Shown: positions 27,070 through 61,500 of the stretch, one piece after another | Numbering within the stretch: the first letter of the stretch is position 1 | Layout: each line of letters begins with the position of its first letter | DNA from: Guillardia theta CCMP2712 | Lineage: Eukaryota; Protista; Cryptophyta | Direction: 5' to 3' | Length of the DNA stretch: 64,000 nucleotides | Assembly: GCF_000315625.1 (NCBI RefSeq) | Contig: NW_005434670.1 | Span: 268,237 to 332,236 of the forward strand | The notes under the pieces: generated by a model | Database searches by the model: none | Seen by the model: the letters and a program-made list of their open reading frames with translations, nothing else | Told to the model about the DNA's origin: nothing | Made by a program: the position numbers and the translations under genes

Positions 27070-28416
27070 ATGATCGCACATCGCCTTCGTTGTAGAACTT
27101 CAGTCCGTGGCTACTTGTTGTTGTTGATCTTCGTACTCTCCTCGGCGTCCGGCGGTCATTGCAGCAAGATGAAAGCTCAAACGAAGCCGCAAAAGTCAGT
27201 GGCAGCAAAACAGCAGAACTCGATGAGCGAGCTGGACAGATACTTTGTGAATGTGTATGGGAGCAAGAGATGGTCCGAGCTGAGAGAAGCGCTGGAAAAG
27301 CCTACCGAGCATGTAGCCTGGATCAACCCCTTCTGCGATTTTCAAGAGCAGACAGCTAGCCGTCTTCTCGGAGAAGAGAAAATCTTCGATGCTTCAGTGT
27401 GGAAGCTGGTCAGGTACAGCGACAAATTTTCTTTCATGGTGCAGCGAGACGATGTTCCATCCGATATCAAGGTGAACATGCCTCCTCCTGCGCCCATCGG
27501 CTTGCGGCAGCTGCACAGCCACTACGTCCTCGACGGCGCCTCGCCGCTCCCCGCCATTTCCCTGCGGGCGGCTCCAGGGAGTCGAGTCCTGGACATCTGT
27601 GCAGCTCCAGGAGGAAAGTCTCTTGTGATTGCAGGAGGGCTCTTCGATGTTGAGACGTCAGGGGCTAAGAGTATGCTGACGTCCAACGATCGCTCGCAAC
27701 CTCGTCGAGACCGTCTGTTGCAAGTGATGCGGGAGTACATTCCTGCCGAGCTGTTGAAGAACGCAGCAAGTAAGGACTCGGGCTCTTATCAGAGGAAGTT
27801 TCAGGGCATTCTCTCTGTCACTGGTGTTGACGCCACGTTGTGGGGCCGAAGTCCAGCAACGTGTGGATGCTTTGACCGCATTCTCGTCGATGCTCCCTGC
27901 AGCAGCGAACGGCATATTGTGCATGGCTCCAGTGGCAGCTCCTGGACACATTCTAGATTGAAACGGGACGCAAAGCTGCAGGGACAAATACTGCAATCCG
28001 CGATCAGAGTTCTGAACCCTAACGGTGGGATGCATGGTTGTTGCAGTAGAGACAGTAGTAACGGTTTCCTCGCAGGTGGTCGACTGGTCTACAGCACGTG
28101 CTCCATCGCTCCAGAGGAAAACGACGAGGTGATCTCGAAGATCATCAATAATTCTCGATTGGCCAAGGGGCTGAAAATTCTGGATCCTCTGGTTGAACTA
28201 CAACACGAGGCCCTTGGCGGTCTGTTACAAGGTGTGGAAAGAACCAAGTACGGTGCTATTATGCTGCCGGACAAGAGCAAATATGGGCCGTTGTACTGGT
28301 GCGTCATGGAGAAAACCATCAGCGGCGCTGCCGGCACAGCATGGCTAGAATCTGAGTCAGATTCAGATTCCGAGAACCAGTCAGGCGAGTCTTCCGAGGG
28401 TCAGGAAGAAACCTGA
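27070..28416 (+). CDS. NOL1/NOP2/Sun-family RNA (cytosine-5)-methyltransferase, NSUN3/NSUN4-like
   Basis: Motifs YVLDGAS, VLDICAAPGGKS, FDRILVDAPCSSE and GGRLVYSTCSIAPEENDEVI (both family cysteines present); probable small in-frame intron at ~28025-28075. Confidence 0.9.
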   Translation: MIAHRLRCRTSVRGYLLLLIFVLSSASGGHCSKMKAQTKPQKSVAAKQQNSMSELDRYFVNVYGSKRWSELREALEKPTEHVAWINPFCDFQEQTASRLLGEEKIFDASVWKLVRYSDKFSFMVQRDDVPSDIKVNMPPPAPIGLRQLHSHYVLDGASPLPAISLRAAPGSRVLDICAAPGGKSLVIAGGLFDVETSGAKSMLTSNDRSQPRRDRLLQVMREYIPAELLKNAASKDSGSYQRKFQGILSVTGVDATLWGRSPATCGCFDRILVDAPCSSERHIVHGSSGSSWTHSRLKRDAKLQGQILQSAIRVLNPNGGMHGCCSRDSSNGFLAGGRLVYSTCSIAPEENDEVISKIINNSRLAKGLKILDPLVELQHEALGGLLQGVERTKYGAIMLPDKSKYGPLYWCVMEKTISGAAGTAWLESESDSDSENQSGESSEGQEET

Positions 28417-40337: not shown

Positions 40338-41355
40338 ACTTCTTGCAAGAGGAGCTCGAAAGCATCGTGAGCAATAGAGATCAGCACTGACACCCAATGA
40401 CGTCACGCATGCTTCACTCAAGGTTTGGCCGCCCCACATTGCTGGAGTTCCGAACTTCGGAAGTTCAATCACTAGCCCGTGACTCGCGCGGCAGTGCCGG
40501 GCTGCCACCGTGATCGGACCAGCCCGAGTCCGATCCCGAGTCCCGGACTTCGGGAGTCCCGGATAAGATAATTATCATTGTGTGTGTGAATCCATGGCAC
40601 TGTGAGTGGTTCCCGGCGAACTCGGACCGTACCGTCCAGGCGGGAGCTCGGCCTCGCCGAGTCCGATCGCGAGTCAGAGTCGTGAGCCAGCGGGCCCAGC
40701 CTGGCAGGCTGGCCGCCGGCGCCGCCGGGCCGGGCCGGGCACTGCGGCAGCCGCGCACGGGCGGTCACCGTGGCCCGGTTTCCGAGTTCACCGCCGCGCC
40801 GCCCGGCCGCACGCCGCCGGTCGGCCGGGCCGATCACGGCACGGAGCCGGGCACGGTACGGTATGATATGTCACCGTCACGGTTTCGAAGGGCCGGCTGA
40901 CTCGACGCCCGGGGGCCCGGCCCGCCGGTACCTTCGGCCGCTACTCAGAACGGCGGTGACTGGCCGCAGTCCGACATTAGTACGGCCCTATTGTGACCGC
41001 CGGTGACTCAAGTTACTTAATGATCGGCCGCCCGGCGACTTTATACTATACCCCGGGCCCGGACCGGTATTTACTAAGTACGGACTTGGCAGGGCCGCGT
41101 GACTCACGCCGACTGTACGGTCAGGCTCCGACGTCGGACGGCCGGGCGACTCAGTGACCGGGCCCGGTTCCGGCGGGCGACGGTCGGACTCCGGCCAGCG
41201 GCCGCCGCCGGCGGCGGGGGCGAGCCTGCCGCCGCGGCGGTGGGAGTCTGCGCTTCCCGGCCCCGGCGGACTCCGTCAGTGGGCACCGGGCCAGGCCGCC
41301 GGGGCCGGCGGTTGCAGCACCGTGCCGCGCGGGACTCAAGTCATGGCATACTGAG

Positions 41356-44300
41356 TTACGGTTCCGAGTCTCTCTCGCAGGGTTGCAGGGAGGTGCGCTC
41401 AAGCTCCGAGACGACCTCGTCAACGCCTTCAATGTCGTCCTCATCCATATCGAGCTCGTACTCGACGATGAGGTTCTTTGCGTCCGGGTGCGTGCTGTCC
41501 ATCCATTCATTGCACCTCTCCCTCAGGTTGATCCAGTCCGGAGGACATTCCCCTGCCCTCCTCCTCCTCCTGTACTCCTCGAGGAGCAGCAGCAGCATGG
41601 GGAAGCGCTGCTGTACGTTCCGGTCATAGATCTGCGCGTAGTTGATGCAGGTAGAGCTCTGCCCCCTCCTTTGGACGAAGATGTCGGCTCCCTCCTCCAG
41701 CAGCATGCGTGCCATCGCCACGTCGTTCCTGTAGGCTGCGTACATGAGCGGAGTCATGCTATGGATGTTCGCCTCCGCCGCACTCCTTCCGTCAAAGTGA
41801 CGATTGACAAGGTTGAATCCAGCTGGGCTTTGTCGCAAGATCCTCCGTAGCTCTTCCACCGCACCAGCCTGCAGGGCAGAGACTAGCGTGTGCGTCGAGC
41901 CCAGCTGGAGGAGCAGCTGTACCGTGTCGGTCAGCTGCAACTTCGCGGCGATCTCGAGAAGGGAGCAGCCGACGAGCCTGAGGTCCTCGGTCGGCCCACG
42001 TGACGAGGCAAGGGGATGGGTGGCTTGCCGACCTCCGATGAAAGCGCTGCTGGGACAGAGCTCCCTGAGGATGTGAGGATGCTCCCCTAGCATCTCCTTG
42101 AGCGCCTGACGAGCTCGCTTGCTCCCGGACAAGACGGTCATGACGAACGCGTCAAACTGCATTCCTATCGCTCCGTAGTGCGGCAGCAGCGCGTCAACGA
42201 CGTCGAAGCGGCGGTACAGAGCAGCAGCAACGATGGGCAGCACAGGGAAGCCGTCTCTACCCTGAAGGCGCGGGGCATTGATGATCCTTGCGACTCGCAT
42301 GGGCTTGGTGAGAAGTTGGGCATCCTCGCGGATCAGCTCCTCCATCCGCTCGATCTCTCCGCTCTGTATGGCCTCCTCCCAGCTCAGCTGCACGGGCAAG
42401 AACCCTGCCAAGAGGCGCTCGAAGCTCTCGCGGTCAGTCTCTCGGTAACTCAAGTCTCCCATCGTCCTCTCAGGCCCGAGGAACTTGCGCAGCTCTGTGT
42501 CGCTCGTTCCTCGGAGGATGCGCGAGTCTCCCTGCCACATCTCAAGCTTCGTGCCCTCGGCTTCCATCTTCTCGTTGTTGCAAACCTTCCCCATGACCAA
42601 TCGCAGTACAAGGCCTGCCGGCTCGCCCTGGGAATCAAGACTCAGCGTTCCCCGCCCGACACCGATCCGTCGATACACAGCTCCATCCCCGTCGTCATCG
42701 TCGTTCGATTGAACGCATACAACATGGAACGAGATCTTGTTGCCCTCCTGCGACCTGTTGAGAGGAAGCATGGTGTATTTGTAGCACATGTCATTGTATC
42801 TCGTGTCCAAATACGTCCAGCGTCCACCAACTTCCGGAAGACAACAAGCTGTCTCCTGCATCACTTGTACAAGCTTTCCGAAGCCAGCGTAAGGAGGGAT
42901 GAGCTGATCGTCGTTGCCCGTGCCAAACTTGACCCATGATTGTCCTTGAGCTACATCGGACGCTTGGCAGGGTTGAAGTCTTCGCTGTACGAGGAGGTCG
43001 GAGTGCATGGTACCCCGGATGGAGAGGTTGATGGCATAGCCCGGTCTCTGCTCATTCCTCGTGGTCGCTTGAGACAGCTCGCTTGCCACGTCACGAAGCA
43101 TCTGGTCGATGTTGCCAGGGAGAGCCTCCTCCGGAAGAACTTCATGTTCACTCGCTCCTCGCTCGAGGATCTTCTCTAGTCGCCACTGCTGTCCTCGCGC
43201 TCTGGGGGGCGCGAGTCTCTCCAGCTCAATGACCATTGCATCGTAGTAGCTTGCTTCCAGCGATGCTCCAAGTCTGTGCAGGCCGAAGCCTATCTCTGCA
43301 TGCTCGCTAGACACGTCCAGCACACCAGCGAAGAGAATCTTGTCTCTGTGCTGTACGAACGAGTAAGCCGTGTCGCTCACCAGCTTGTCCTCCTTCTGCT
43401 TGACCAGCGGCCACAGACTCGTCAGCCCGTTGCGCCATGCGGTGATCAGCTGCGAGCCCTGGGTTACGACTGTGATGTGGTCTGAGACGTAGGTGACTGC
43501 AGATTTCAACTCGATCCGCCAACCACGACGGACAGTGTCTCGGATGAGCTCAAAGCTGATGTCGTCTTCCTGCATGCGCCGAACAGCATGAAAGGTGAGC
43601 TGCTGCCTCAGCAGGTCTGTGGACATGCTTGAGATCGCTGTCCGAGCTCGTTCTGACTTGACATCTTCAGCGACCCGAGTCTGGCTTCTTCCCAGCTCGA
43701 GCTGTTTCTGCATGTTGGAACCGCCTCCTGTCAGGTCCGTCCTTTGAGCATGAGCTTCTTCCTTGAGGAAGTCCTGCAAGCTTACGAAGCCACTGTTGCA
43801 TGCCTGCAGTGCGTCAAACGATCTCCCCAGCTGCCCGCTCAGCTCTCCCTCTCCCTCTCCCTCTGGCTCGGTCCAATCCAATCTGCCACTGCTGAAATTG
43901 ACAACCCAGCCAGCGCTGCTGATCCAGGTTCTCAGCTTGCAGAGGCCATCAGCTGGACCCTGGCTCCTCAGCATCATCTCAGTGTTGTATTCGAGCAAGC
44001 AGCGAAGCACAAAGACGCTGCTCAGTTTCGTCATCTTGAAGATGGCGATGAAGCTTCCAACCTGTACTGCCTCTTCGAGAAGAACGCAATAAAACAAGCT
44101 GCCATTGCCCATGCCCTCCGATTCGCGTAAATACGCCTCCAGAGAGTCCATCCCGTCCGCAGCAGACATAGATGGGTCGTACAATGATTCTACCTCCGAT
44201 TGCCAATTGAACAAGGCATCTTGCCGCGCTTGCTCGTCTGTTATGAAATCGTTCATCAGTGTGCTAAGCGTGTAGTCCAGCATCGCAATGCACAACTTCT

Positions 44301-45459
44301 CTCGAGGTACATCTGCATGGCCCTCTCGTTCCCTCCATTCCTCAAACGACGAGGAAGATATCTTTCCCGCATCGTAAAACTTCTGCACAAGGCCAACGAG
44401 CTCACTCTCAAGTCGGTTGCGCCTCACCAAGGAGTACCAGTGATGAAGCACTGGACGTGACGAGAAGCTGATAAACTGCAGGAAGTAGAGCAGCATCCCC
44501 GAGCACAGCCTCCAGCGCGACTCTTGCTCATGCATGCTGTGTAGGAAGCGCCTGCATGCATCCTTGGCATGGCGCTTAAACATCTCAGCGTCTTCCTGGC
44601 TGTAAGCCACGACAAACACATCCCCTGCTCTTGTTTGCGTCAAGCCTCCTTGCTCGCCTTGCTGGACGACGCCTACAGCTCGCTCCATCCCACTCCCTGC
44701 CTGCTCTACATCGCGTTGGGTCTGATCATCCATGGCAGCTGGAGGAGGTGCCGCATTTTGCCGTCGCATGACGCCATGCTCTTGTCCCCATGCGCGCACA
44801 TCACTAGGCACGCGAGCGAGCAGGTGGCACTGATCACATTTCAGTCGAAGATAATCTCTCACGATCACATCCAGGCAAGAGTTCTGCCCGAGCGAGTAGT
44901 AGAGCTCTTTCGCAATATCAATCGCGTCCTCGTCGCTCACTTCCTTCTCATGGGCGATGATGAAGTCGACATGGCCGCGAAGCTTCTCGGCGATCAGGCT
45001 CGACCAGCACAAGTTGAGCACCACCAGCCGCAGATTCTTGCAATCGAGGATTACTTCTTGCAAAGAGCGTATCAAGTCATCTGCATCAACGCTCTTGCCT
45101 CCCAGGGTCAATCTACCATCTTCAAAGCCATGGCAGGCGATGTGAAGGATGGTTGGCTGTACTCTTGAAATCTCGCGGCGCAGATAAGAAGCATCCTTGT
45201 GGAAGAAGTACTCAAAGTTCACTCCTTGAGCAAGTTCCAATAGAGCACGATCTTTCGCATCAGCGGCTCCTACGACAAATTCCTTTCTCAACTCGTCTCG
45301 CTCCTTCTCCACCTTCAGTCCACTTCGCTCCTTTGCGTCAGCGAAAAACAGCACCCTATGAGGAGCTCGACTGAAAAGCACGTCCTCAGCGCTAGCAGCC
45401 GCATCGGCAACTTCCTGCTGTTTGCAGCAGCTACACAACTGATTGAGATTGTTCGACAT
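41356..45459 (-). CDS. Intronless 1367-aa multidomain protein: CHAT (caspase-like) protease + unknown domain + DUF4258-like module + ankyrin repeats
   Basis: CHAT: RVLFFA..LKVEKERDEL..LRREISRVQPTILHIACHG (His110, codon 45130-45132)..LRLVVLNLCWS (Cys151, codon 45007-45009)..VSDEDAIDIAKELYYSLG. DUF4258-like: LTFHAVRRMQEDDISFELIRDTVRRG..ITVVTQGSQLITAW (~43428-43603). Ankyrin: LPIVAAAL, SLLEIAAKLQLTDTVQLLLQLG, MTPLMYAAYRNDVAMARMLLEEGADIF. Confidence 0.85.
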   Translation of the reverse strand: MSNNLNQLCSCCKQQEVADAAASAEDVLFSRAPHRVLFFADAKERSGLKVEKERDELRKEFVVGAADAKDRALLELAQGVNFEYFFHKDASYLRREISRVQPTILHIACHGFEDGRLTLGGKSVDADDLIRSLQEVILDCKNLRLVVLNLCWSSLIAEKLRGHVDFIIAHEKEVSDEDAIDIAKELYYSLGQNSCLDVIVRDYLRLKCDQCHLLARVPSDVRAWGQEHGVMRRQNAAPPPAAMDDQTQRDVEQAGSGMERAVGVVQQGEQGGLTQTRAGDVFVVAYSQEDAEMFKRHAKDACRRFLHSMHEQESRWRLCSGMLLYFLQFISFSSRPVLHHWYSLVRRNRLESELVGLVQKFYDAGKISSSSFEEWREREGHADVPREKLCIAMLDYTLSTLMNDFITDEQARQDALFNWQSEVESLYDPSMSAADGMDSLEAYLRESEGMGNGSLFYCVLLEEAVQVGSFIAIFKMTKLSSVFVLRCLLEYNTEMMLRSQGPADGLCKLRTWISSAGWVVNFSSGRLDWTEPEGEGEGELSGQLGRSFDALQACNSGFVSLQDFLKEEAHAQRTDLTGGGSNMQKQLELGRSQTRVAEDVKSERARTAISSMSTDLLRQQLTFHAVRRMQEDDISFELIRDTVRRGWRIELKSAVTYVSDHITVVTQGSQLITAWRNGLTSLWPLVKQKEDKLVSDTAYSFVQHRDKILFAGVLDVSSEHAEIGFGLHRLGASLEASYYDAMVIELERLAPPRARGQQWRLEKILERGASEHEVLPEEALPGNIDQMLRDVASELSQATTRNEQRPGYAINLSIRGTMHSDLLVQRRLQPCQASDVAQGQSWVKFGTGNDDQLIPPYAGFGKLVQVMQETACCLPEVGGRWTYLDTRYNDMCYKYTMLPLNRSQEGNKISFHVVCVQSNDDDDGDGAVYRRIGVGRGTLSLDSQGEPAGLVLRLVMGKVCNNEKMEAEGTKLEMWQGDSRILRGTSDTELRKFLGPERTMGDLSYRETDRESFERLLAGFLPVQLSWEEAIQSGEIERMEELIREDAQLLTKPMRVARIINAPRLQGRDGFPVLPIVAAALYRRFDVVDALLPHYGAIGMQFDAFVMTVLSGSKRARQALKEMLGEHPHILRELCPSSAFIGGRQATHPLASSRGPTEDLRLVGCSLLEIAAKLQLTDTVQLLLQLGSTHTLVSALQAGAVEELRRILRQSPAGFNLVNRHFDGRSAAEANIHSMTPLMYAAYRNDVAMARMLLEEGADIFVQRRGQSSTCINYAQIYDRNVQQRFPMLLLLLEEYRRRRRAGECPPDWINLRERCNEWMDSTHPDAKNLIVEYELDMDEDDIEGVDEVVSELERTSLQPCERDSEP
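41398..42393. repeat. 996-bp inverted repeat, arm A (ankyrin end of the CHAT gene)
   Basis: Reverse complement of 46780-47775; one mismatch seen (41732/47441, Tyr->Cys). Confidence 0.97.
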
Positions 45460-46435
45460 ATCCCGGAGTCCTCCCGACGTCCGTGTGAAGCAGGAGGGCA
45501 GAGCCAGGGTGGGATGTAGGGAGGGCGAGAGGTGCGGAGGAGCAGGAGAGCAGGGGATGTGCGAGTGGAAGTAGACTAGCGCCGCGCAGAGGATGGCGAA
45601 AGGCGGAGGGTGCCAAGCTGAAGCGACGGTTGCGCTGAGAGATCATTGATGGAGGGTGGGGTATGCCCAGGACGGGTAGCTGGAGCCTTTATTCCATGAA
45701 TAAAGATAGGGGTCACAGGATTCTGACACTTTCTGCAGGGGTACGGTACTGTCAGTAATGGTGTTGAGTGAACCCCGGGCCAGGCAAACTCGGCACTGAA
45801 TACCCGCCGGGCCCGGCGGCGACCGGGCCCGGAGCTTTTGCTTTTCTCGGGGTGGCAAACCTGACTCGGCCCCGAGTTCATCGGGCGGAAATGCGCGGGG
45901 CAGTGGATTGATGGTAGGAGAGCAGAGGGCATGAGCGCAAGATGGTGAGAGAGGAGGACGAGAGCTCGAACGTGATCGACATGGTGATGCAGCTTGCGCT
46001 CAAGGAATGCTCCATGTGACGATTGCGTCCTCCAGAAAACTCACTTTGAGCATCAGTAGCACTGAATCCTCCGTTGTCCGTCTTGGAGTATCCTCGCACA
46101 CAGCTAGGAGATGTGCTCTCCAGATCAGCACACCTTATGAATGTCAAGATCAGCGGAAGCTCTCAGCCATCCAGCCGCGATCATCCGTCTCACGTTGCTT
46201 CTGTGCTGCAGCGCGATCAACCCTGCCCGTACTTCGTTGCTGTGTCCCGAGATGATTAGAAGCTCGAAACTTCAAGACAGACGTCTGTCTGCTGGTGATG
46301 GTGCCGTTCCCCTTGTGTTGTTCTGAGCTGTGCTGCACAAACTGTTGTCGCAGCCCTACCTACCCTCAAGCAGGAGGTGATAGCGCGCATTAGCACAAGA
46401 CTGTCATACGAGATTGTTGACGTCCGGTTGAGCAG

Positions 46436-46757
46436 AGGGATGGGGAGGATGTGCGGCATATCCCACGAATGATGCCAGACAGCTGTCATATGAGACATGG
46501 TGAAAGGAGTACATGTTTGCAAACAGGTGCTGTCCAAGGAAATACCAAGCGCTCTAACGGGGCCAACAGGCCGGTGATCATCAGCGGCATCAGCGATGAC
46601 TGGGGATGTCGAGGATGGGTCAAGACATGCGAAAGATGCCATAGGGGTGGAGAAGCTGTGCATGTATCATACTGACCTTGCTGACCTTTGTCATACAGTC
46701 GACTGCCTTATGTCAAACCAGATCTCGACCTCCTCGAGACAATGTTTGAAAAGGAAG
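46436..46757 (+). pseudogene. Disabled JMJD4-like (JmjC hydroxylase) N-terminal fragment
   Basis: RHIPR(frameshift)DARQLSYETW*KEYMFAN-[intron 46527-46569]-RPVIISGISDDWGCRGWVK...KPDLDLLETMF resembles the JMJD4 N-terminus (LSY.EF...Y...N.PV...G..DDW....WV...P.L..L); in-frame TGA at 46501-46503; the JmjC core is absent. Confidence 0.65.
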
Positions 46758-46779
46758 GAGTCGAGCAAGATTTGGAGAG

Positions 46780-47910
46780 GTGCAGCTGAGCTGGGAGGAG
46801 GCCATACAGAGCGGAGAGATCGAGCGGATGGAGGAGCTGATCCGCGAGGATGCCCAACTTCTCACCAAGCCCATGCGAGTCGCAAGGATCATCAATGCCC
46901 CGCGCCTTCAGGGTAGAGACGGCTTCCCTGTGCTGCCCATCGTTGCTGCTGCTCTGTACCGCCGCTTCGACGTCGTTGACGCGCTGCTGCCGCACTACGG
47001 AGCGATAGGAATGCAGTTTGACGCGTTCGTCATGACCGTCTTGTCCGGGAGCAAGCGAGCTCGTCAGGCGCTCAAGGAGATGCTAGGGGAGCATCCTCAC
47101 ATCCTCAGGGAGCTCTGTCCCAGCAGCGCTTTCATCGGAGGTCGGCAAGCCACCCATCCCCTTGCCTCGTCACGTGGGCCGACCGAGGACCTCAGGCTCG
47201 TCGGCTGCTCCCTTCTCGAGATCGCCGCGAAGTTGCAGCTGACCGACACGGTACAGCTGCTCCTCCAGCTGGGCTCGACGCACACGCTAGTCTCTGCCCT
47301 GCAGGCTGGTGCGGTGGAAGAGCTACGGAGGATCTTGCGACAAAGCCCAGCTGGATTCAACCTTGTCAATCGTCACTTTGACGGAAGGAGTGCGGCGGAG
47401 GCGAACATCCATAGCATGACTCCGCTCATGTACGCAGCCTGCAGGAACGACGTGGCGATGGCACGCATGCTGCTGGAGGAGGGAGCCGACATCTTCGTCC
47501 AAAGGAGGGGGCAGAGCTCTACCTGCATCAACTACGCGCAGATCTATGACCGGAACGTACAGCAGCGCTTCCCCATGCTGCTGCTGCTCCTCGAGGAGTA
47601 CAGGAGGAGGAGGAGGGCAGGGGAATGTCCTCCGGACTGGATCAACCTGAGGGAGAGGTGCAATGAATGGATGGACAGCACGCACCCGGACGCAAAGAAC
47701 CTCATCGTCGAGTACGAGCTCGATATGGATGAGGACGACATTGAAGGCGTTGACGAGGTCGTCTCGGAGCTTGAGAGGCACTTGGTTGCATCCTGGCTTG
47801 AGCCATATAGCCTCCACATGGCGTGTAGCGACATGGCCATGTGTTTAGTCTTGAGAGGAGCGGGAGAGGAGCGCAAGAGGCTCCTGTGGAGGAGGAGAAG
47901 CGAGGATTGA
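46780..47910 (+). CDS. Ankyrin-only partial duplicate of the CHAT gene (arm B, 46780-47775) with a different C-terminal tail; expressed gene or pseudogene
   Basis: Protein identical to the C-terminal ankyrin region of the CHAT protein except one Y->C; first in-frame ATG at 46828; tail HLVASWLEPY...RRRSED*. Confidence 0.55.
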   Translation: MQLSWEEAIQSGEIERMEELIREDAQLLTKPMRVARIINAPRLQGRDGFPVLPIVAAALYRRFDVVDALLPHYGAIGMQFDAFVMTVLSGSKRARQALKEMLGEHPHILRELCPSSAFIGGRQATHPLASSRGPTEDLRLVGCSLLEIAAKLQLTDTVQLLLQLGSTHTLVSALQAGAVEELRRILRQSPAGFNLVNRHFDGRSAAEANIHSMTPLMYAACRNDVAMARMLLEEGADIFVQRRGQSSTCINYAQIYDRNVQQRFPMLLLLLEEYRRRRRAGECPPDWINLRERCNEWMDSTHPDAKNLIVEYELDMDEDDIEGVDEVVSELERHLVASWLEPYSLHMACSDMAMCLVLRGAGEERKRLLWRRRSED

Positions 47911-52500: not shown

Positions 52501-55500
52501 CCTCTTGAAATCGGCACAACTGAACTTCGTGAGTCCAATGCTTGTTGTTTACAAGTACAGGAGGCAAGAGAGCAGGCACAAAAGGTATCGATCCTGTAGC
52601 GACAAACATGTCAGGGAATACCTCCTCTGGAGATCCGGCAAATTCCTACCAAGCTCTGTACAGAACGCCGAATTCTGAAGGGACGAGAAGTTGTTGACCA
52701 GGTGCCGCATCAGCATTTCTGAGGTTTCAACACAAAAGTTCTTCTCTTGGTCATCTGCAGTCGAAGTAGCAAATCGAGATGTGACTTTCCTCGCGCACTA
52801 GCAACAGTGTCACTTGATAAGGTAACAAGAATCATAAACCTACAATGAGAAACAATTCGGCATCTATGAACGTCTTGAGTCCGAGCTGACGCAATATGGA
52901 CAACCACTCATCGCTTGTCATGTCTCCTTGCGGAAAGAGTGGCTCGGAAGAAAAGATTCTCCATAACAACCTTTATCGTGTCAAGAGCAGAACCATCGAT
53001 GGCGGAGTTATCACCGGTTGCTGGGGTCGAACAACTCGTTCGGACGGTACAGGTGCTCTCCAACCTCCACGAAGGCAAGCTCTCGCAGCTTGTCGACAAG
53101 ATTCGTCCTCCTTTGTATCTGAGAGTTGAGATCACAAAAGTTCGGCTGCTCATACTTCGAGGTGACCTTAGGCCAATGGCAGCGCAGCTGCTCCAGCGCA
53201 GCTTGTCTCCGGGAAATGTCAAAAGTCTGAAATTTGGGGAGAACAAACATTTCGAAGAGCGCCGCATCATCGAGTTCTTCAACGCCTAATGCTGCAAACA
53301 AGGTTAGCCCTCCGATCATCTACCCTATCACCGGCTTTTACCATCATAGAATCTTTTCTCTTGCAACTTCAGCAGCCTCTGGTCTTCAACATGAAGAGGA
53401 ACGTTGGTGGGGCAGAGGAAATAGTCTCCTTCATCGATTGATACAAAGTTGCCTTGCTTCGTCTCGAAGATGGGAAGACTTCGAAGCGAACGTATTTCTG
53501 ATGTGTTGATCATATTCTACGAGTAAACAAATGCAGTCAGGAAGGTTTGAATATCGTGTATGCACAGTCACCGTTCGATGTGCGTTGGCGAAAAATTGAA
53601 AGACTGCAACACATTCGTTTGCTGGAAGATTGGACCTCAATGCTCTGTCACCGGTGCTCACCGAGGACAAGGAAACAAGCGCTTGGCGAGCAAAGGCAGT
53701 AGGATCTGTCTTCGGCAGCAAAGCAGAGAAGACTGGCAAGTATGTGTCAAAGGATCAGTAGTGGATTGAAGGACAAGGTAGTGCCTGGATGAATAATGGG
53801 ACATCCTAGTTGTCTCAGTCCTGTGAGGAGAGGGTTCCTCTGCAGGTAAAGTGTAGTCGATTCCATCGAGTGACCCTCCGTCCCCTCCGCATCGAATTCG
53901 AGGCGATCGCTCCCGAAGTCAAAAATCCGCAACTCTTGTCCCTCACCCGCCAACTCAGTGCTCTCAGCAGGCAGGTCTTCGGTCAGGTTCAGGACCTGCA
54001 CATGTTTCAGTCCGTCATGACAACACAAGGCAGCAAACCTGCATGATGCACTCTGAAGACACCAGGTCGCCGTCGCACAAGGGGATGAGAGGCCACTCGT
54101 CGACGAGATAAATTCCCCGCACCCCAACAAACTTCCAAAAGTTGTGGAGCCACCCCGGAGGAGGAAGCCCGACGCCTCCGCTGCTGTAGCCGCTCACACG
54201 CCTGCACCTCTTCCAGCTGGCTGGCAGCACAGAGTCAAGTCTCCGAATGAAAAGTTCAGGTGTGAATCGCTTGAGCGACGTCGATTGAAGGAATTCATCG
54301 TTACTGAACCAACCCCTCAACCTGTTGTGACAATGTCAGGGCACAACAACAGAGAACCGAAGCTTTCTAGACCTCGACGAACAGCGGTGATGTACAAATG
54401 AGTTTTTCAAGCCGGGAAGTAAATTCTACAAGCATGTCAAGTTCGTCAGAATGTGGACCTGGGCTGACCTGCTCCTCCTCTGAAGCTACAAGGGCGTCGT
54501 GGGGAAAATTGACAATCGTGCCGTTGGCTAATGGCAAGAGGCGAACAGAATGAAGAGATCTGAAATCTTTCCTGCCATGGCTCGAGAGGTCTTGCAGGCA
54601 AAACTCAAGCACGTCGATGGCAATGTCAATGTTGTCGCTGTTCTCCTGCTTCACGACACCTGCGACAAGGTCGATGTTGTCAGTCGTGGGAGGCGCGGGC
54701 CTGCATCGTGAGCAACCTGCAAGAAGAGCGTCGAAGAGACGAGGGTCGCCCTTGAGCCTGGCCCTCACCTTGTCAGGGCTGATCTCACTGACGTCTCGGA
54801 TCCCCGCATTTCGAATCTCCGACCCGATGAAAGGAGGACAGGAGAAGAGAGGAAACATGAGCGCACACAGGCGCTGCAAGCTGCTGTTGGAGGCTTCGGG
54901 AGGAAAGACTCCGGCTTGCAACTTCACAAAATTTCCTGAGCTGAGCAAGAAAAGTGGGAGTTGGCCAAGTTTGCTATAAACTGGCCGATGGACAGTGTCG
55001 ATGAAAGGGTTTTCAATAGAAGAAAGCTGAGGCCAGAGGGAGTAGAAGAGAAGGGGAACATCCTTGAATCGCGGGCACAGAGCAGAAACAAGGTCAACAT
55101 ACGCATCGCTCGAGCTCTCCAAGAGCTCTTGATTCCACTCCAGCTCGAACCTCTCGATGCTCGAAAGATTCTCCTTGCTGAGGCCCTGCTGAAGCAGGGC
55201 AAACGCATTGGACGTGAGTTCGAACCAGCCGTTGATGTGCACCGGAAGGCCCGTGCGCATCACTTTGCTGTATGCAAACAGATGCCCTTCAAGCTTCGGC
55301 AGCGTCGACCCGTCACAGGAGAGGAGAGCAGCAACCGATACGCAAGGAATGAGTTTCTTGGTCTTCTGTTCAAGGGCCATCTTGCGGCTAGTGCGTGATC
55401 CTATCATGCCAGCGATGAGCCAGTGATGCTGCTGTCTGACGTCATTACGATAGTTCAGGGAGTTGATCTTCAGCTCATACATGTGCTTGATGGCAGGTAC

Positions 55501-58500
55501 TGACCCAAACACACTCATCAAGTTGAATTTCTGCCATTCTTTGTTTGCCGAAAGAGCTCTTCGTGACAATCGGATAGAAGCAGATACTGACAAGTCAATA
55601 CACGTCTTGAACTCGCTAACCATCTTGTCCGATTTCTCGCTCCATGAAAACACCTCAATACTTTCAAGATGTTCGAGGAACAAGAGAGCTTCGTGATTCA
55701 ACCAGTTTGTGCTTGAGTCCAACAGCTCTTGAAATTCTTGTTGGTCCATTTGCCTACCAAGAGAGAATTCGACATCAGCATCCTTGGAAGCTAATCTTAT
55801 TGGCATGCGAAAGAGGGTTCCATGAAATTCTCGTTCGGCATTGAACCCAAAAACTTGAAAAGGAACAAACTGATCGGCAAACTTGTTTGACAAGTCGGAG
55901 TTAACGTACAAGTGCGCCTTACCAACAGCTCTTGCCTTCTTTTGATCCTGATCCATGAAGTAACATCCTTGAGGGTCGAAGAAGTATAAACCTTCCCCAG
56001 ACACGATACAGGGGACATCTGTAAAGTGGTACATCGCGTTCAGCCCAGGCCCGTTCTTCACACTCCTGTGCAGGCCTTGAAGGTCTTGGTTCTGACATTG
56101 AAGTCGAGATATTTGTTCTGCTCCCAACTTCACTCCTTTGATGTACATGATGAGCGAAGGGCCCTGCAAGGAAGACAAGTTCGGTTGGAGCAGAGATTGT
56201 GAGTTGTGAGTCCTGAAATCGAACAAGAAGCAGACTTCTCTTGATCCCAAGGTGTCAGCAAAATCGACAAGATGTGAGAGCATTTGCCCGTGGCTCTCAA
56301 AGTCACGCAAGGTGCTTCCGATCATAGAGGGAGAGGGGCATGGAAGGTCCTTGAGGTTTAACTGGCCCGAGATGAGCAGTTTGCGAACAGACTTCAGTCC
56401 AAGCGACTGGGCAGCCTCGTTGCCGATCTCGTGGTGTACAAAGAGAACATCGTTCATCGTGGATGAAAGCCAGGGAGCATCGTCGTAAACCAGCTGACTG
56501 GCAGGGCGCATAAAGCTGTCAGCATCTGGCAAGAAAATCTCGCCCAAGTTTCGTCCGTCCTCACCGCTCCTTGAAGCTTCCAATGCAAGGTTCTTAGCTA
56601 GGGTCAAAACCTCAGAATCGAGCTGTTGACCGCAAAAGGCCTCGTGTATTCGTTTCAACGCCGACAAGTAATCAGATCGAGAAAAGCTCTGACGAACTCC
56701 TATCTTTCGAAAGAGATCTTTGTATTCTTCTAGCTCTTCTGGAAACCTTCGAAGGAATGTCAGAAAATGGTTTACTAAGGTAGGAAAGAACTCACCCGTG
56801 GAGAAGTGGAGCGCAGTCCACATTGCAATCAAATGCAACCCTTGCAGGGCATACAAAACCCAAGGGCAAGAGAAGAGTTGGCTGATTCTTCAACGCAGAA
56901 CTCAAATTCCCCTCCCATTCATGCACTCGCTTGCAGAGGAAATCGTAAATTTGCAGAGTTGCAACTTTCACCTGGTCGGGAAGTGTGAATGCCTCGGTAG
57001 AGTTCATCAATGGATCTATGAAACTCTGGTCTTGAAAGATCTTCCCATACTCGAGCAGTTGGCTTACAATAGCCCTTAAAGGAATAGGACGATGCCAGCC
57101 CATAAATTCTTCTAGCTCGGGGCTGAAATCCTCAATCGATGCGATCGACGCACTTGAGGAGACAAGAGCTAGGTCTCTGTACGGTCTTGAATTCAGAGGG
57201 GAGTCCAGCACCGGGACTTGGGACAACCAAGGAATTTGCTGAGAGGGAGGGACTTGCAAGACTGGAATCCAACGCAATTCAAGAAGTTCGTTCCTGAAAC
57301 TGTCCCACGAGTCGTCCACTTCACATATCAAAGAGTTGTATTTCGAGAGAAAATGAATAAGTTTTTTCGCCCGATGTTCAACATCCATGTCGTCACCAGC
57401 TCCTACAGAGCACGATATGGAATAAGCAACCTGAAGAACCCCAGTGCGATCTAGCGACGTCCGTAGCCCCAGTCGCAGCAAGATTCCGATAAGCTCCGGC
57501 TTCGTGAAAGACTTCGCTGGATAAAACTCCCCGCCCTCCAGTAGATCCTGGAGCTCCTCCACGCTTGGATCGTACAGATCCTGCGCCCTCGCCAGCTTCC
57601 CGCTGGCCGTCGGTATAAACTCCAGATCCCGCAGCCTCTCCCAGAACCTCTTGTCCTCTCGGCATATCTGAGGCAGGTTCGCCAGCATGTGGTGTACGCT
57701 CTCCTCGCACACCTCAAGCTCCATCTCTCGCAGCCGTGGAAACACCCCCTCGCTGTAGAACTCGTGTAGCTTCGCCGTCTTGATCCCTATCAAGCTGTAC
57801 ACTCGCGACTCTGCCTCGTCCGCTCTCAGATAGTCTGACGTCAGCAGTCTCTCCGGTATTCCCCCCGGCGGAAGCTGCTGCCAGCTGATCCCTACGAAGC
57901 TCGTGTCCCTCCCGTACACCTCGTGCACGGGCAAGATCACCACCAGCCGTCCCTTCCCGTCCCCCTCCTCTCCCGCTTGGAACCAGCGCTGCTGCAGACA
58001 GTACGCCCTCAGCTCCCGCTTCTCGCTCCCTGACAGCCCTGATACCCGCTCGCACAGAAGCTCCACCGACCCTCCGTTCCCCGACAGAGCCGCAGTCATC
58101 ACCCCTTGCAACGACGCGCTCTGTACGTACCCCCGTACAGCATCTGGTCGACTGATGTACTCCCGGTCAAGCATCCGGCACCCCAGCTTCGACAGAAGGT
58201 GCTTCATCCCCTCCCCCATCGTGCTCGCCCCGTCCACCACCCTGCAGTCCTTGCTCGACACCCGGCAAAGGCTCTCCTCTTGCGTAGGGATGAGCGGCCA
58301 GTCGCCAAAGCTCCCCAGCACCTCCTCGTCCCTCGCGTAGCTCCAGAACGCCTTCAGCCAAGCCTTGGTCGGCTGTCCGTCCTCTCCTGCCCGCCATCGT
58401 ACCTCCTCCAGCCCCCGCCACCCGTCCGGCAGCACCCGCTCTAAGCATGCGCTGACCAGTCCAGGCATCAGGACCTTGACGTTGGTGTAAGCTCCCATCG

Positions 58501-61500
58501 CCTCGCTCCTCATGTGCGCCAGGATCTCCTCCGGCGCTACGGGATCTACCAGCGACGCCTTCATCGAGTGCAGCAGGGCTACCTCCTCGGCGGTTCCGAC
58601 GAAGATGGGCTTATCCTTGGAGCTTCCTAGTCTGGTGCAGCGACCATCAGCAGTTGGAATGATGGGGATGCCAATCAAGGTTTTGTAGGCTTCTCCACCA
58701 TCTGTGTCAATGGGACTTCCAAGTATCATGTCTGATAATGAGTAAGCCAGACAATTGAGAATTTTGTTTCGGTCGAAGTTTGCAAGGACTTCCTTGTCTC
58801 TTTGACTTAAAAACCATCTGAAGAACGTTGGACAAATTTCTGTTATCTTTACGGAAGATCGGAAACCTTTCAGTACGAAATCAGGAACATCAACAACGGG
58901 TTCACCAAATGAAAGCAGTATATCTCCGATCTCCTTGACAAGCTCATCATTGGTGTTCAAGAACCTTGCTTTGCTTGGAGATACCCATTTGCCTCCTCCT
59001 ACACGGCTGTACAGTACCGCATGCCCAGCACACTCCCCGTACACCCTCCGCGATAGCGACGCCCACGGCTCTCCAACCTGCGTGCTCGGCCACATGCTGT
59101 AGTAGCTCTCCAAGCTCTCGCCCTTCACCCTCCCCGTCAAGTGCAGAAGCAACCGCGCATACGTTGGCGCAATCACGTCCTCCACCAACGCCGTGTTCCA
59201 GTCCGCGCGGATCTTCCCCTCCCCTGTCATGTCGTCTCCTCGCCAGATGTCCCTGCGGTTAGACGAGAGCTCGAAGTACCCATTCACGTGCAGCGGCAGG
59301 TCGGTTTCGGCAGGGAGGGGAAGGAAGCAGAACGCTTTGCCCTTGACCTTGGTCATGCCAGAGCCATCTCTGGAGATGAGGGCAGCTACACCGCCCCAAG
59401 GAACGAGTTTTAGTGAGGTATTGGAAGAGTCAATCGCGAGCTGTCTCGCGGCTCCTCCTCCTAGGGAAGAAAGAACATACCAGGCTTCTCTTTGCTCTTC
59501 GTTATCTCCAATGTATTGTCTAATTTCGATGCAGGATTCAACCTTTGGATTGTTTTCAGGAGTATATCTTTTGAGGAGATCGTGCAGACTCTCTCGATTG
59601 TTTGAAGAAACATTTCCTTTTTGAAGAAGATCTGAAATACTCGAAATAGACTGTGCATCGGTCAGTGGGGAAGGAAAGGCTTGAAGAGAACATATTCTTG
59701 AAAGATTCTCTCCAGAATCGTCAACCTCATAGACGTTGATATGCCGTATGTTTTTCAAGAAGAGGAGTGCTTCTGACCCGATTCTCATGAATCTCTCGAC
59801 AAGGTCAGTCAAGTCCTTCAACAGATATGACTGGCCTTTGATCTCACTCTGTTTTGCAACCTCCACGGTCCGAAGTGGAAATCGAAAGAGAGTTCCTTCA
59901 TACCTGTTCGTTAAGTCACACCCTAACAGCAGGTATGGCTTGAATTGGTCTGGGAACTGATCCAACACTTTGTTCCTGGTAAATTTTATGCGAATTCCTG
60001 GATGCTGAATGTTTGCACCTGGAAGATACTTGGTGTGGGGGTCGAAGTATACGAGGTAGTCACCACTCACAAAACTAGGAACATCTGTAAAATGGTAAAC
60101 TGCATTGAAACCTAATCCAAATCTGCCAATCTTGTTGAGAAAATCAAGTTTGCTGCCTTGCCCAATCTTGCAGATATTTTTGAAATCATCTGGGCTGAAG
60201 ATAGAGTTATTGTGAAAATAAATGGCTGGGCCTTGCCAGGATGCCATCCTAGGTGACAACAATGAAGATGTAGAGTAGGTGCACTTGTTCACAATGATAC
60301 TGAATTCAGTAGCCTGAGCGTCATCTGCATTCTGTATCAATTCATTCATGATCCCTGGTCCCTCGGGATACAATTCCAGGATATGCTTCAGACGTCCAGT
60401 AAGAGATTCGCTTTGGCCAAATGATTCGGAATCCTGTAAGCCGAGGTCAACCAGATCTGAGGTTTGAAAAAGCAGTTGCTTTCTCAATGATGCTACTCCG
60501 ACACGGTCGGCAACTTCAATGGAAATCTTTGGATGAACAAATTCGATTTCATCTGCGATAGCACTCGGCGCCATCCATGGAGCATCATTGTACGTCAAAG
60601 AGGTAGCAGGTTTCAGAACGTTATCGCTGTCAGGTGCAAAAATCTCAATTTCACTGGAATGGAAGCGATCATCAGCAACAAATTGTACCATTGCAACGGC
60701 AATATCCAACATTTCTGGAGATAGAGGGCTCTGTTGATACTTAGTTTTCATCTCTTGTAAGGCATTGATGTAGTCCCTACCATCAAAAGACTCCTTAATG
60801 CCCATTGCCCGAAACAATCGTGAAAATTGCAACAATTCAGACGACAGTGCACAGAGGAATGGCTTGCCATTAAGAGTACAACGAAAGGCCACTCGTGAAG
60901 GAGCAACAAATCTATCTCCCAGCCAAATCCAAGATGCGCTTTTCAGAATAGCTTTTACATTAGACAAGTCTTCCTGGTCAATGCGGTTCTGTAATGTTTC
61001 ATAAATCTTATGAATTGAGGAGTTGAATAGAGCTTGCGCCTCCGGATTGTCTTCCGAATGCTTGATTTCCGAAAATTTGACTAATTGGGCAGCAACCAAT
61101 TCAACATCAAGTCCCTTATTCCATGAAAAGAAATCAAGCATCACTGGGCATGTAACTTCCCCATCAATGATGCTCATATAAAAAGAAATCAAGCAAAGAT
61201 CTGCTTTTGGTCTTACGTCCGATGGGCATGCAAGTGGCGATCGATCGTCAGTCCATGGAAGCAGTTGATGTGGACTGTGAACCAACACCGGAACCCAATT
61301 CAAACTAGAAAGCCGTTCTCGGAAAGTCTCGATCGATATTTCAGAAGAACTCTTCCCCAACTTCTCCCCCGCCTGGGACTGAGACACAAAAGAGTTAAAG
61401 ATAGATTGAATACCCAAGGACGCCATTGTCCCCACTGATGCCGAAGTCTTTGAAACTAATTTCTTAAGATTACCATTCAAAAATCGAAGAAATGCCTTGG

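Follow-up and report, generated by a model that had tools for sequence, protein, structure and literature searches.

A single-exon gene of Guillardia theta joins a CHAT-type caspase-fold domain to a DUF4258-like, ankyrin-repeat protein

Results

An uninterrupted 1367-amino acid ORF in a 64,000-nucleotide window of the G. theta CCMP2712 genome (the whole stretch of DNA analyzed) encodes a protein whose N-terminal half is a CHAT domain followed by a new helical domain, and whose C-terminal half (C–D) is a complete copy of a protein that stands alone in other cryptophytes. An in-frame fusion of these two older genes describes it better than a designed three-part system does. That cryptophytes have an NLR-like repertoire of conflict or cell-death proteins and that this one is part of it, as a sensor-activated CHAT protease, is in our view about as likely as not. 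The features of the ORF, in order of the encoded protein, are as follows.

41356–45459, minus strand: uninterrupted ORF, 1367 amino acids plus stop (ORF call)
45424–45435, minus strand: N-terminal cysteine cluster C9-x-C11-C12, CxCC (paralogue conservation)
44800–45372, minus strand: module A, CHAT-type caspase-fold protease domain, aa 30–220 (Pfam, PDB profile, Foldseek, VIA, Atlas)
45130–45132, minus strand: His110 codon
45007–45009, minus strand: Cys151 codon
44596–44814, minus strand: linker 1, aa 216–288, predicted disordered (pLDDT 26–33; composition V/Q/A/G)
43756–44613, minus strand: module B, helical domain of about 290 amino acids, aa 283–568 (homology and model)
43603–43755, minus strand: linker 2, the fusion junction, aa 569–619 (within a low-pLDDT stretch, about aa 513–619)
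43420–43602, minus strand: DUF4258-like head, aa 620–680, LTFHAVRRM...ITVVT...LITAWR (near-threshold Pfam)
42460–43419, minus strand: two small up-and-down beta-barrels, about aa 657–847 and 872–995 (AlphaFold model)
41470–42393, minus strand: module D, ankyrin-repeat region, aa 1023–1330 (Pfam Ank, Ank_2, Ank_5)
41359–41469, minus strand: acidic C-terminal tail, aa 1331–1367 (composition)

The ORF contains no internal stop. Although the frame stays open for 61 codons upstream of the ATG, this start codon is conserved with the N termini of the paralogues, whose starts it matches in the alignment. A run of 1367 open codons at 56% GC excludes a chance origin, and parts of the product have homologues at 40–59% identity. 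The first-pass annotation had pointed to an intron-free 4.1-kb ORF in an intron-rich genome, and this holds: the neighboring plus-strand gene contains four short GT..AG introns between 45.98 and 46.57 kb. The ORF is a genuine, undamaged coding sequence in one exon, specifying a soluble protein of several domains. Across 13 paralogues, C12 never varies, and at least 90% retain C9 and C11; the CxCC cluster is a candidate S-acylation or metal site.

Module A is a CHAT domain of bacterial type

For module A, profile and structure comparisons were combined. An N-terminal CHAT domain with both catalytic residues, of bacterial rather than metacaspase or separase pattern, had been proposed from the sequence, and both parts of this proposal were borne out. 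The motif ILHIACHG spans aa 104–111, placing His at 110, and VVLNLCWS spans aa 146–153, placing Cys at 151. Pfam CHAT (PF12770) was matched at aa 81–155, marginally in the whole protein (24.8 bits, cut-off 24) and with 27.9 bits in a six-frame search. A family profile of module A matched PDB entry 8tl0 (SAVED-CHAT) with an E value of 4.4e-9; iLHlaCHG and LRlvvLNlC line up with the HG and Cys motifs of 8tl0, which puts the His110/Cys151 dyad in register. With the module A model, Foldseek gave an E value of 2.4e-7, and VIA superimposed it on 8tl0 with Z 17.9 (rmsd 2.9 Å over 176 residues, 20% identity), so that a caspase fold is indeed matched by the segment for which it had been suggested (aa 30–210). 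The next VIA matches were DdvA (Z 11.2), Csx29 (Z 11.0), and caspases and separase (about 10), with separase, legumain and GPI transamidase present in the match list at Z 9–11. In an Atlas search, the top 10 clusters were all bacterial CHAT (PF12770), and a paralogue on contig C86 carries a CHAT protein name in UniRef. Among 13 paralogues, 12 retain the catalytic His and 10 the Cys. Sequence and model together firmly confirm that module A is a CHAT domain with the caspase fold and that its dyad is intact; it is a predicted protease.

Module B and the linkers

Both linkers noticed in the first-pass annotation were recovered, with pLDDT below 50 in the AlphaFold models. Between them, module B is helical in the model (pLDDT 60–87), and no relatives were found in Pfam, the PDB or Atlas; in every other protein that carries it, a CHAT, Peptidase_C14 or TIR domain precedes it. 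From these comparisons, module B is a new, predicted helical domain without known relative. Linker 2 contains M583, and homology to the stand-alone C–D proteins begins at about aa 595. As the pair L033 and L034 have Met codons just upstream of the point where C–D homology begins, M583 is likely the ancestral start of the C–D gene.

The C–D half and its DUF4258-like head

Residues 583–1367 correspond to a full copy of a cryptophyte protein of about 785 amino acids, comprising a DUF4258-like head, two small beta-barrels and ankyrin repeats, which stands alone in Hanusia and Rhodomonas. The family gave 37 matches among 1.84e9 representatives, the named ones all from cryptophytes. In a tree of the C module, this G. 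theta sequence, the Hanusia copy and the L033/L034 pair make up a trichotomy; the module is therefore old, yet its frame is still open.

The head had been annotated as a DUF4258-type module, predicted to be a toxin-type RNase. Its T.HA..RM..R.I-type motif stands, whereas the family assignment is borderline: against Pfam DUF4258 (cut-off 25), the whole protein scored 19.4 bits (aa 621–652), while the six-frame search gave 23.1, an isolated 76-amino acid segment 24.7, and homologues 19.6–21.4. In every case the match covered profile positions 1–26 to 1–34 of 71, the helical first half alone. DUF4258 was nevertheless the sole Pfam family matched by this segment in five of six cryptophyte homologues, and a phage DUF4258 cluster (score 0.84) was among its protein-language-model neighbors. 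The modeled secondary structure (helix, helix, four strands) follows an order that fits the colicin-like BECR topology of pre-alpha, alpha and beta1–4, in which the active-site His lies at the position matching the TxHA His (bioRxiv 10.64898/2026.08.28.747851). This residue, His624, is retained in all five homologues covering the stretch (G. theta copies, Hanusia and Cryptomonas paramecium), a count that leaves out Rhodomonas, whose gene models begin after the position. The RNase fold itself was not recovered: PDB Foldseek, VIA wide, BFVD and Atlas returned no BECR, RelE or colicin structure, and the segment had no sequence relative in the PDB, bacterial genomes or the protein database. The model contains no separate BECR domain, as the strands of the head merge into the first barrel, which begins within the DUF4258-like part.

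Hanusia, Rhodomonas, Cryptomonas and environmental contigs all share the conserved barrel region. The GRW motif of the second barrel (aa 879–881) is invariant, and the best VIA match of the barrels (Z 7.8) was not significant. C-terminal ankyrin repeats and an acidic tail had been read correctly from the sequence. Over aa 1168–1275, Ank (36.7 bits), Ank_2 (32.0) and Ank_5 (33.9) all exceeded their cut-offs, and the tail after aa 1330 contains 9 Glu and 6 Asp in 38 residues.

The fusion, its surroundings and its transcription

Among 1.84 billion representatives, each match to B or C–D hit B or C alone, and no second protein joining B and C was found. On these searches, the locus is the sole place found at which the CHAT–B and C–D halves are joined, in keeping with the earlier remark that the architecture was not recognized as described. 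Three further features bear on its history and expression.

41398–42393, no strand assigned: left arm of a 996-nucleotide inverted duplication, covering module D and most of the tail (base match)
46780–47775, no strand assigned: right arm, the ankyrin part of the spliced plus-strand gene
43595–43670, plus strand: 76-nucleotide intron of an antisense transcript, on the B/C junction (contig of run X4)

The two arms, of which the left lies at the 3′ end of the ORF, are 4.4 kb apart. They are equal to the reverse complement of each other at 995 of 996 bases with sharp ends, and both inner junctions are present in contigs of the DNA runs. A decayed, rearranged copy is present on contig C12. In the RNA-like run X4, depth was about 16 over the C–D half versus 3–5 over the A–B half, and 3 reads came out of 19.8 million records of a raw RNA run. 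Just one splice junction was seen within the ORF, and it lies on the opposite strand: an X4 contig leaves out 43595–43670, with flanks aaag and cgac and intron ends gtgagc and cttcag that are canonical on the plus strand only.

A CHAT family with interchangeable heads

The copy number of the CHAT module, which the first-pass annotation had left to be counted, was at least 14 in G. theta. The genome search gave 35 matches, with tandem arrays on contigs C118 and C97, and the nearest paralogue of the A–B half is 40% identical. One paralogue, L011, combines A and B with NACHT (28.7 bits against a cut-off of 26.7), pentapeptide and WD40 regions, and six others (L012–L017) combine A with armadillo (ARM) repeats. 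Module B also follows Peptidase_C14, including in a protein with a cpSF2-GREB1 helicase region (P0008), and TIR, either by itself (P0028, P0034) or with ankyrin and WD40 repeats (P0031). CHAT, C14 and TIR heads thus interchange in front of module B, and the catalytic dyad is missing from some CHAT paralogues. The family is large and undescribed, and on this analysis looks like an innate-immunity repertoire of NLR-like pattern. The 1367-amino acid protein has NLR-type ends, with CHAT at the N terminus and an ankyrin array at the C terminus; as Pfam identified no NACHT or NB-ARC NTPase in it, it is not itself an NLR. No match to gasdermin (PF04598) was found across the 87-Mb genome, although divergent gasdermins might escape such a search. 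No obvious substrate gene lies beside the ORF, and PADLOC returned nothing significant.

Discussion

We know of no innate-immunity or regulated cell-death machinery described in cryptophytes, and an immune role for this family is inferred from its composition. In the preferred reading, the protein runs from the CxCC cluster through CHAT, a disordered linker, module B and linker 2 into the complete C–D protein. The barrel–ankyrin part would bind a partner or ligand; binding or clustering would bring CHAT domains together and activate them, as in other caspase-fold enzymes, and the protease would then cut its substrates. Cleavage would most likely occur in trans, because to our knowledge every characterized CHAT enzyme cuts other proteins. 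The DUF4258-like head may act as another effector, with putative RNase activity, or just cap the first barrel structurally. Counting against this reading are the missing NTPase domain, the absence of a gasdermin match in the genome and of an obvious substrate gene nearby, the scarcity of raw RNA reads with an antisense junction as the sole one in the ORF, and the empty PADLOC result.

The first-pass annotation had gone further, with ankyrins sensing an invader, CHAT cutting its own linkers and a freed DUF4258-type RNase halting translation in an abortive death. The intact dyad, the disordered linkers, the near-threshold DUF4258 match with its language-model neighbor and the conserved TxHA His at the BECR active-site position speak for it. 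Set against them are a profile score below cut-off over positions 1–33 of 71, a head that merges into the barrel and has neither structural nor sequence relatives, the trans action of known CHAT enzymes, and a C–D half that does without a protease in other cryptophytes; moreover, the activity of DUF4258 itself has never been tested (PMC11980606). We regard this account as decidedly improbable. Its most elaborate form, a single-chain protease and caged toxin built from bacterial-type parts, in which the barrel–ankyrin part senses an invader, CHAT cuts the disordered linkers to free a colicin-like BECR RNase that kills or arrests the algal cell in one-protein abortive infection, and module B is a new adaptor coupling CHAT, caspase or TIR heads to sensors, is highly doubtful.

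The fusion could instead be an evolutionary accident, in which a CHAT–B gene lost its stop codon or intergenic spacer and now reads into the neighboring C–D gene where the locus was recently rearranged, so that the fused product is rarely or never made and, if anything, C–D is translated from M583. The uniqueness of the union, the position of M583 at the start site of the stand-alone genes, the inverted duplication, the decayed copy, the uneven X4 depth, the antisense intron at the junction and the near absence of raw RNA reads all fit this explanation, but 4.1 kb of frame has stayed open, the A–B half keeps its frame, dyad and CxCC at only 40% identity to its nearest paralogue, and the C half is intact despite being as old as the Hanusia split; we consider an accident rather unlikely. 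A regulatory protease outside immunity, acting on a cellular substrate in signaling, organelle or cell-cycle control with the ankyrins as scaffold, is unlikely. Separase and some metacaspases are such processing enzymes of the cell, housekeeping caspase-fold enzymes appear among the structural matches, and neither a defense HMM match nor a pore-forming partner was found. Yet lineage-specific tandem expansion, shuffling of heads with TIR, C14 and NACHT–WD40, and loss of the dyad in some copies are traits typical of conflict genes and not of conserved housekeeping enzymes.

The family places bacterial-type CHAT, C14 and TIR heads before one new helical domain wired to NACHT–WD40, armadillo, ankyrin, kinase or helicase regions, the same combinatorial logic as in NLR-like systems of animals, plants, fungi and bacteria. 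If it is immune, this logic would reach another major eukaryotic lineage, module B would be a new adaptor domain for study, and the head would allow the idea of a BECR-type toxin built into a eukaryotic protease to be tested. Even an inert fusion would be a clean example of architectures arising through in-frame joining of adjacent genes.

SAVED-CHAT of type III CRISPR–Cas, the closest solved structure to module A, is a bacterial enzyme of about 480 amino acids activated when SAVED binds cyclic oligoadenylate, whereas the G. theta protein lacks SAVED and carries CHAT N-terminally, followed by module B, barrels and ankyrins. In TPR-CHAT/Csx29 (Craspase) and the CHAT anti-sigma factor DdvA, the CHAT domain is likewise coupled to a region of repeats or a sensor. 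Both proteases are switched on by a signal and act in trans, but they serve CRISPR or sigma-factor pathways with known substrates, and such partners are absent here. Among eukaryotes, fungal HET-Q2-like CHAT proteases form expanded cell-death families with TPR, ANK, WD40 or NLR architectures (PMC8851545), to which L011, with CHAT, B, NACHT and WD40, is comparable. The fungal genes adjoin the gasdermin that they cleave and carry CHAT at the C terminus (PMC8851545); G. theta differs in lacking a PF04598 match and in its N-terminal CHAT, and module B and the barrels are missing from fungi.

DUF4258 and Ntox49 resemble the head in their TxHAxxRMxxRxI-type motif and in the modeled order of helices and strands, but are small prokaryotic or phage proteins of 70–110 amino acids with antitoxin partners (PMC11980606, bioRxiv 10.64898/2026.08.28.747851), whereas in the G. 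theta protein the first half alone matches, the strands run into a beta-barrel, and both an antitoxin and a structural match are absent. Module A falls in the CHAT branch and not in C14, unlike G. theta metacaspases such as GtMC2 (PMC5756287); metacaspases of types I and III possess calcium sites as well as a p10 region, and module B is absent from them. The G. theta Peptidase_C14 proteins with module B, which also have a caspase fold, share that domain with the ORF product.

Reading frame and modules of the window gene

The window gene is real, as are its CHAT domain and its ankyrin repeats. A single open frame of 1367 codons was found on the minus strand at window 41356–45459, where the first-pass annotation had placed an intron-less 4.1-kb ORF, and its start codon is credible because the ATG (MSNNLNQLCSCC) lines up with the N termini of paralogues, e.g. 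MTSTLSKICVCC. A chance ORF was rejected as a reading of this frame. The 1367-aa sequence is contained, letter for letter, in the ESM Atlas, and a public gene model therefore exists; a look-up of contigs encoding exactly this protein had no entry for it. The motifs that had been picked out by eye, ILHIACHG (aa 104–111, including His110), VVLNLCWS (aa 146–153, including Cys151), and LTFHAVRRM (aa 621–629), were all located at the positions first assigned to them. The whole protein gave the following matches.

Pfam matches of the whole window protein
aa 81–155: CHAT, 24.8 bits (cut-off 24)
aa 621–652: DUF4258, 19.4 bits (cut-off 25)
aa 1168–1275: Ank / Ank_2 / Ank_5, 32–37 bits (cut-offs 21–27)

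The proposed C-terminal ankyrins, with scores exceeding the Pfam cut-offs, and the acidic tail behind them were both recovered. The two Gly/Gln-rich linkers were likewise present, as stretches of pLDDT <50 in AlphaFold models (aa 216–288 and approximately aa 513–631), and both are predicted to be disordered. A six-frame search of the genome (87.1 Mb, 669 contigs; window on contig C4) with the window protein returned 35 matches, which fell into four modules.

Modules of the window protein from the six-frame genome search
aa 1–235: module A, CHAT
aa 243–568: module B, new helical domain
aa 595–1005: module C, DUF4258-like head and barrels
aa 1005–1358: module D, ankyrin repeats

Module A is present in at least 14 copies, including six in a single array on contig C118, and module B in at least 19, including eight in an array on contig C97; modules C and D occur in the window, on C112 and on C61, plus a decayed copy on C12. 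Two named relatives are GUITHDRAFT_115648 (C86) and GUITHDRAFT_134650 (C12). A literature search found no paper on the window protein, nor one with both "Guillardia theta" and "CHAT domain." A word-indexed protein search gave no match for the window protein, the DUF4258-like alignment, or the A + B alignment; its index is length-limited and apparently lacks G. theta proteins, so these blanks say little.

The CHAT protease domain

For module A, a profile was built from 13 paralogous modules and compared with the PDB, where it matched the SAVED-CHAT structure 8tl0 at E 4.4e-9, with the HG and Cys motifs of 8tl0 in register with iLHlaCHG and LRlvvLNlC of the profile. In the AlphaFold model of aa 1–600, module A had a pLDDT of 70–86, and its top Foldseek match was again 8tl0 (E 2.4e-7). 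By VIA, the same structure (Z 17.9, rmsd 2.9 Å, 176 residues) stood far above the next matches, DdvA CHAT (Z 11.2) and Csx29 (Z 11.0), with legumain, caspases, gingipain, separase, and metacaspases at Z of approximately 9–11. The 10 nearest ESM-Atlas clusters were all bacterial PF12770 families (TM ≤0.66). Because profile, Foldseek, VIA, and Atlas comparisons all favor CHAT or bacterial PF12770, the earlier claim that the domain follows a bacterial rather than a separase or metacaspase pattern holds.

Of the 13 paralogues, 12 conserve His110 and 10 conserve Cys151. Also near-invariant among them is the CxCC cluster at residues 9–12, a candidate S-acylation or metal site. When the CHAT-module alignment was scanned against genomes of bacteria and archaea, no relative emerged, and the window protein matched no PADLOC defence model significantly, the PADLOC caspase model being matched only by a C14 + B paralogue. 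No gasdermin (PF04598) was found in the G. theta genome. At window 45001–45041, which encodes LRLVVLNLCWS, both DNA and RNA contigs branch and depth rises 2–3-fold; this stretch is common to paralogues at the nucleotide level.

Module B and family architectures

Module B is helical in the AlphaFold model and had no relative in Pfam, in the PDB by profile search, or in the Atlas by feature search. It always lies behind an interchangeable CHAT, caspase, or TIR head and before NACHT or repeat arrays, an arrangement suggesting an adaptor-like role within a conflict repertoire of the NLR type. The architectures below comprise G. theta loci (L numbers) and relatives from protein database searches (P numbers).

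Architectures related to the window protein
L011 (1680 aa): A + B + NACHT + pentapeptide + WD40
L012–L017: A + armadillo arrays
C97 array and others (approximately 600 aa): Peptidase_C14 + B
P0031 (1543 aa): TIR + B + Ank + WD40
P0028, P0034: TIR + B
P0024: C14 + B
P0036: CHAT + B
GUITHDRAFT_146844 (P0008): C14 + B + cpSF2-GREB1 helicase + TAGT

The contig that encodes P0034 is 959 kb long, and its genes appear to be interrupted by introns; P0034 therefore comes from another eukaryote. By its domains, the window protein belongs with the CHAT/NLR-like multidomain proteases, as a new variant, and by analogy this family context supports a role in conflict or cell death, more strongly than could be known from the window alone. 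A viral or mobile-element origin was rejected, the copies lying in host-like tandem arrays without element hallmarks. The C118 array (114–168 kb) consists of tandem CHAT-module genes (A + B + NACHT + WD40, A + ARM, and A + B), and that on C97 (155–229 kb) of tandem Peptidase_C14 + B genes.

Fusion of CHAT–B with a C–D gene

An exhaustive search of 1.84 billion representatives with a B + C profile retrieved only 37 proteins, each with either B or C and none with both; all named matches were from cryptophytes (G. theta, Hanusia phi, Rhodomonas salina, and Cryptomonas paramecium). Modules C and D alone make up proteins of 784–787 aa in Hanusia and Rhodomonas and locus L033 on C112 (761 aa), and one environmental relative, P0033, carries an extra protein kinase. 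Homology of the window protein to the C–D proteins starts at approximately aa 595, and its M583 falls at the start-codon position of the stand-alone proteins; the 1367-aa frame therefore represents a CHAT–B gene joined in frame to a C–D gene. Among the representatives searched, this fusion is so far unique.

A tree of module C placed the window copy, that of Hanusia, and the L033/L034 pair in an unresolved three-way split; the window C–D copy is therefore old, yet still an open frame. A PDB sequence search with the module C profile was empty or at chance level. L025 (C12:388500–393000) is a C + D copy that has decayed and been rearranged: it contains stop codons, its pieces are spread over both strands, and one 150-aa fragment is annotated as GUITHDRAFT_134650. 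In L034 (C61:218000–227999), module C is in one frame and module D in another, the two abutting near query aa 1004–1007; the frame change points to a short intron or frameshift, at the same C/D boundary at which the inverted duplication starts.

The DUF4258-like head

DUF4258 is assigned to the BECR superfamily, where it and Ntox49 overlap within the colicin-like group; activity has been tested for no DUF4258 member (PMC11980606; bioRxiv 10.64898/2026.08.28.747851). The proposal of a DUF4258 domain at aa ~620–678 is borderline. In its favor, the isolated 76-aa segment scored 24.7 bits (E 3e-5), DUF4258 was the only family matched in five of six cryptophyte homologues, and the His of TxHA is conserved wherever a homologue includes that stretch. 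The modeled order of elements (long helix, helix, four strands) is that of the colicin-like topology, in which the active-site His lies on the pre-α helix (bioRxiv 10.64898/2026.08.28.747851). Against it, only positions 1–33 of the 71 in the profile were ever matched, and the module C model gave no BECR match by PDB Foldseek, VIA wide, BFVD, or Atlas, nor any significant fold match at all (best VIA wide Z 7.8, noise level). By sequence score, membership narrowly misses the curated threshold of 25 bits.

In the model, the head strands continue into the first of two small β-barrels (model residues 62–252 and 277–400). Protein-language-model neighbors at 0.84–0.85, including a phage DUF4258 cluster, and the Atlas entry of an actinobacterial DUF4258 protein of 295 aa (TM 0.22/0.29 against the module C model) are leads only. 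The PDB sequence search with the segment profile was empty or at chance level, the DUF4258-like alignment had no relative in bacterial and archaeal genomes, tblastn of aa 612–692 against phage genomes gave chance hits only, and PHROGs held nothing for the segment. We slightly favor a genuine BECR derivation of the head; that it acts as an RNase seems doubtful, and that such an RNase is released by autocleavage improbable. The sensor–protease–RNase mechanism first proposed is speculative.

Transcription across the ORF region

Contigs of the RNA-like run X4 span 41337–44710 and 45323–45601, at a depth of approximately 16–17 over C–D, 3–5 over A–B, and 0.3 in an intergenic bin; the ORF region is therefore transcribed. 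The only junction inside the ORF skips 76 nt at 43595–43670 (aaag/gtgagc...cttcag/cgac). Its ends are canonical (GT..AG) only when cut on the plus strand, so the skip is antisense, and a minus-strand reading was rejected. This plus-strand intron lies exactly on the B/C junction, where the two fused halves meet. Out of 19.8 million records, a raw stranded RNA run contributed only three reads, and just one has the orientation of a sense transcript, so sense expression of the full 1367-aa frame is only putative. It may be that the fusion arose by accident and is not expressed.

Inverted duplication and neighboring genes

The last 996 nt of the window gene (41398–42393, module D) are repeated in inverted orientation at 46780–47775, with 995 of 996 positions identical and sharp ends; both inner junctions were confirmed by contigs of the DNA run. 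The sole difference, T versus C at 41732, changes Tyr to Cys, and X4 and another run, X2, carry the C variant. The right copy forms the ankyrin part of a spliced plus-strand gene (45854–47910).

Introns (GT..AG, 43–59 nt) of the plus-strand gene in X4
45983–46034 (+)
46294–46352 (+)
46375–46433 (+)
46522–46564 (+)

With these joints the upstream exons give no single clean frame, which makes further introns likely; the translation of one exon includes ...RPVIISGISDDWGCRGW...

Elsewhere in the window, the minus strand at 54367–63964 carries two ORFs that abut each other and lack introns (829 and 2390 aa); they contain at least three domains of the Sacsin family (PF25794; E 6e-83 and 4e-34) and are probably a single giant sacsin-like gene extending beyond the window. 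A low-GC block at 12000–14100 (0.335 for 12001–14000), with long overlapping ORFs on both strands and with TCC/GGA/GAG/ATG microsatellites and CT-rich repeats at its flanks, separates a WD40 ORF (10042–11742) from a Cfap43 coiled-coil ORF (14441–15943) and probably lies within one CFAP43 gene. An RsmB/F-type (NOL1/NOP2/Sun) methyltransferase ORF (27070–28416, plus strand) and a separate ankyrin-repeat ORF (5706–6980, plus strand) look like ordinary host genes.
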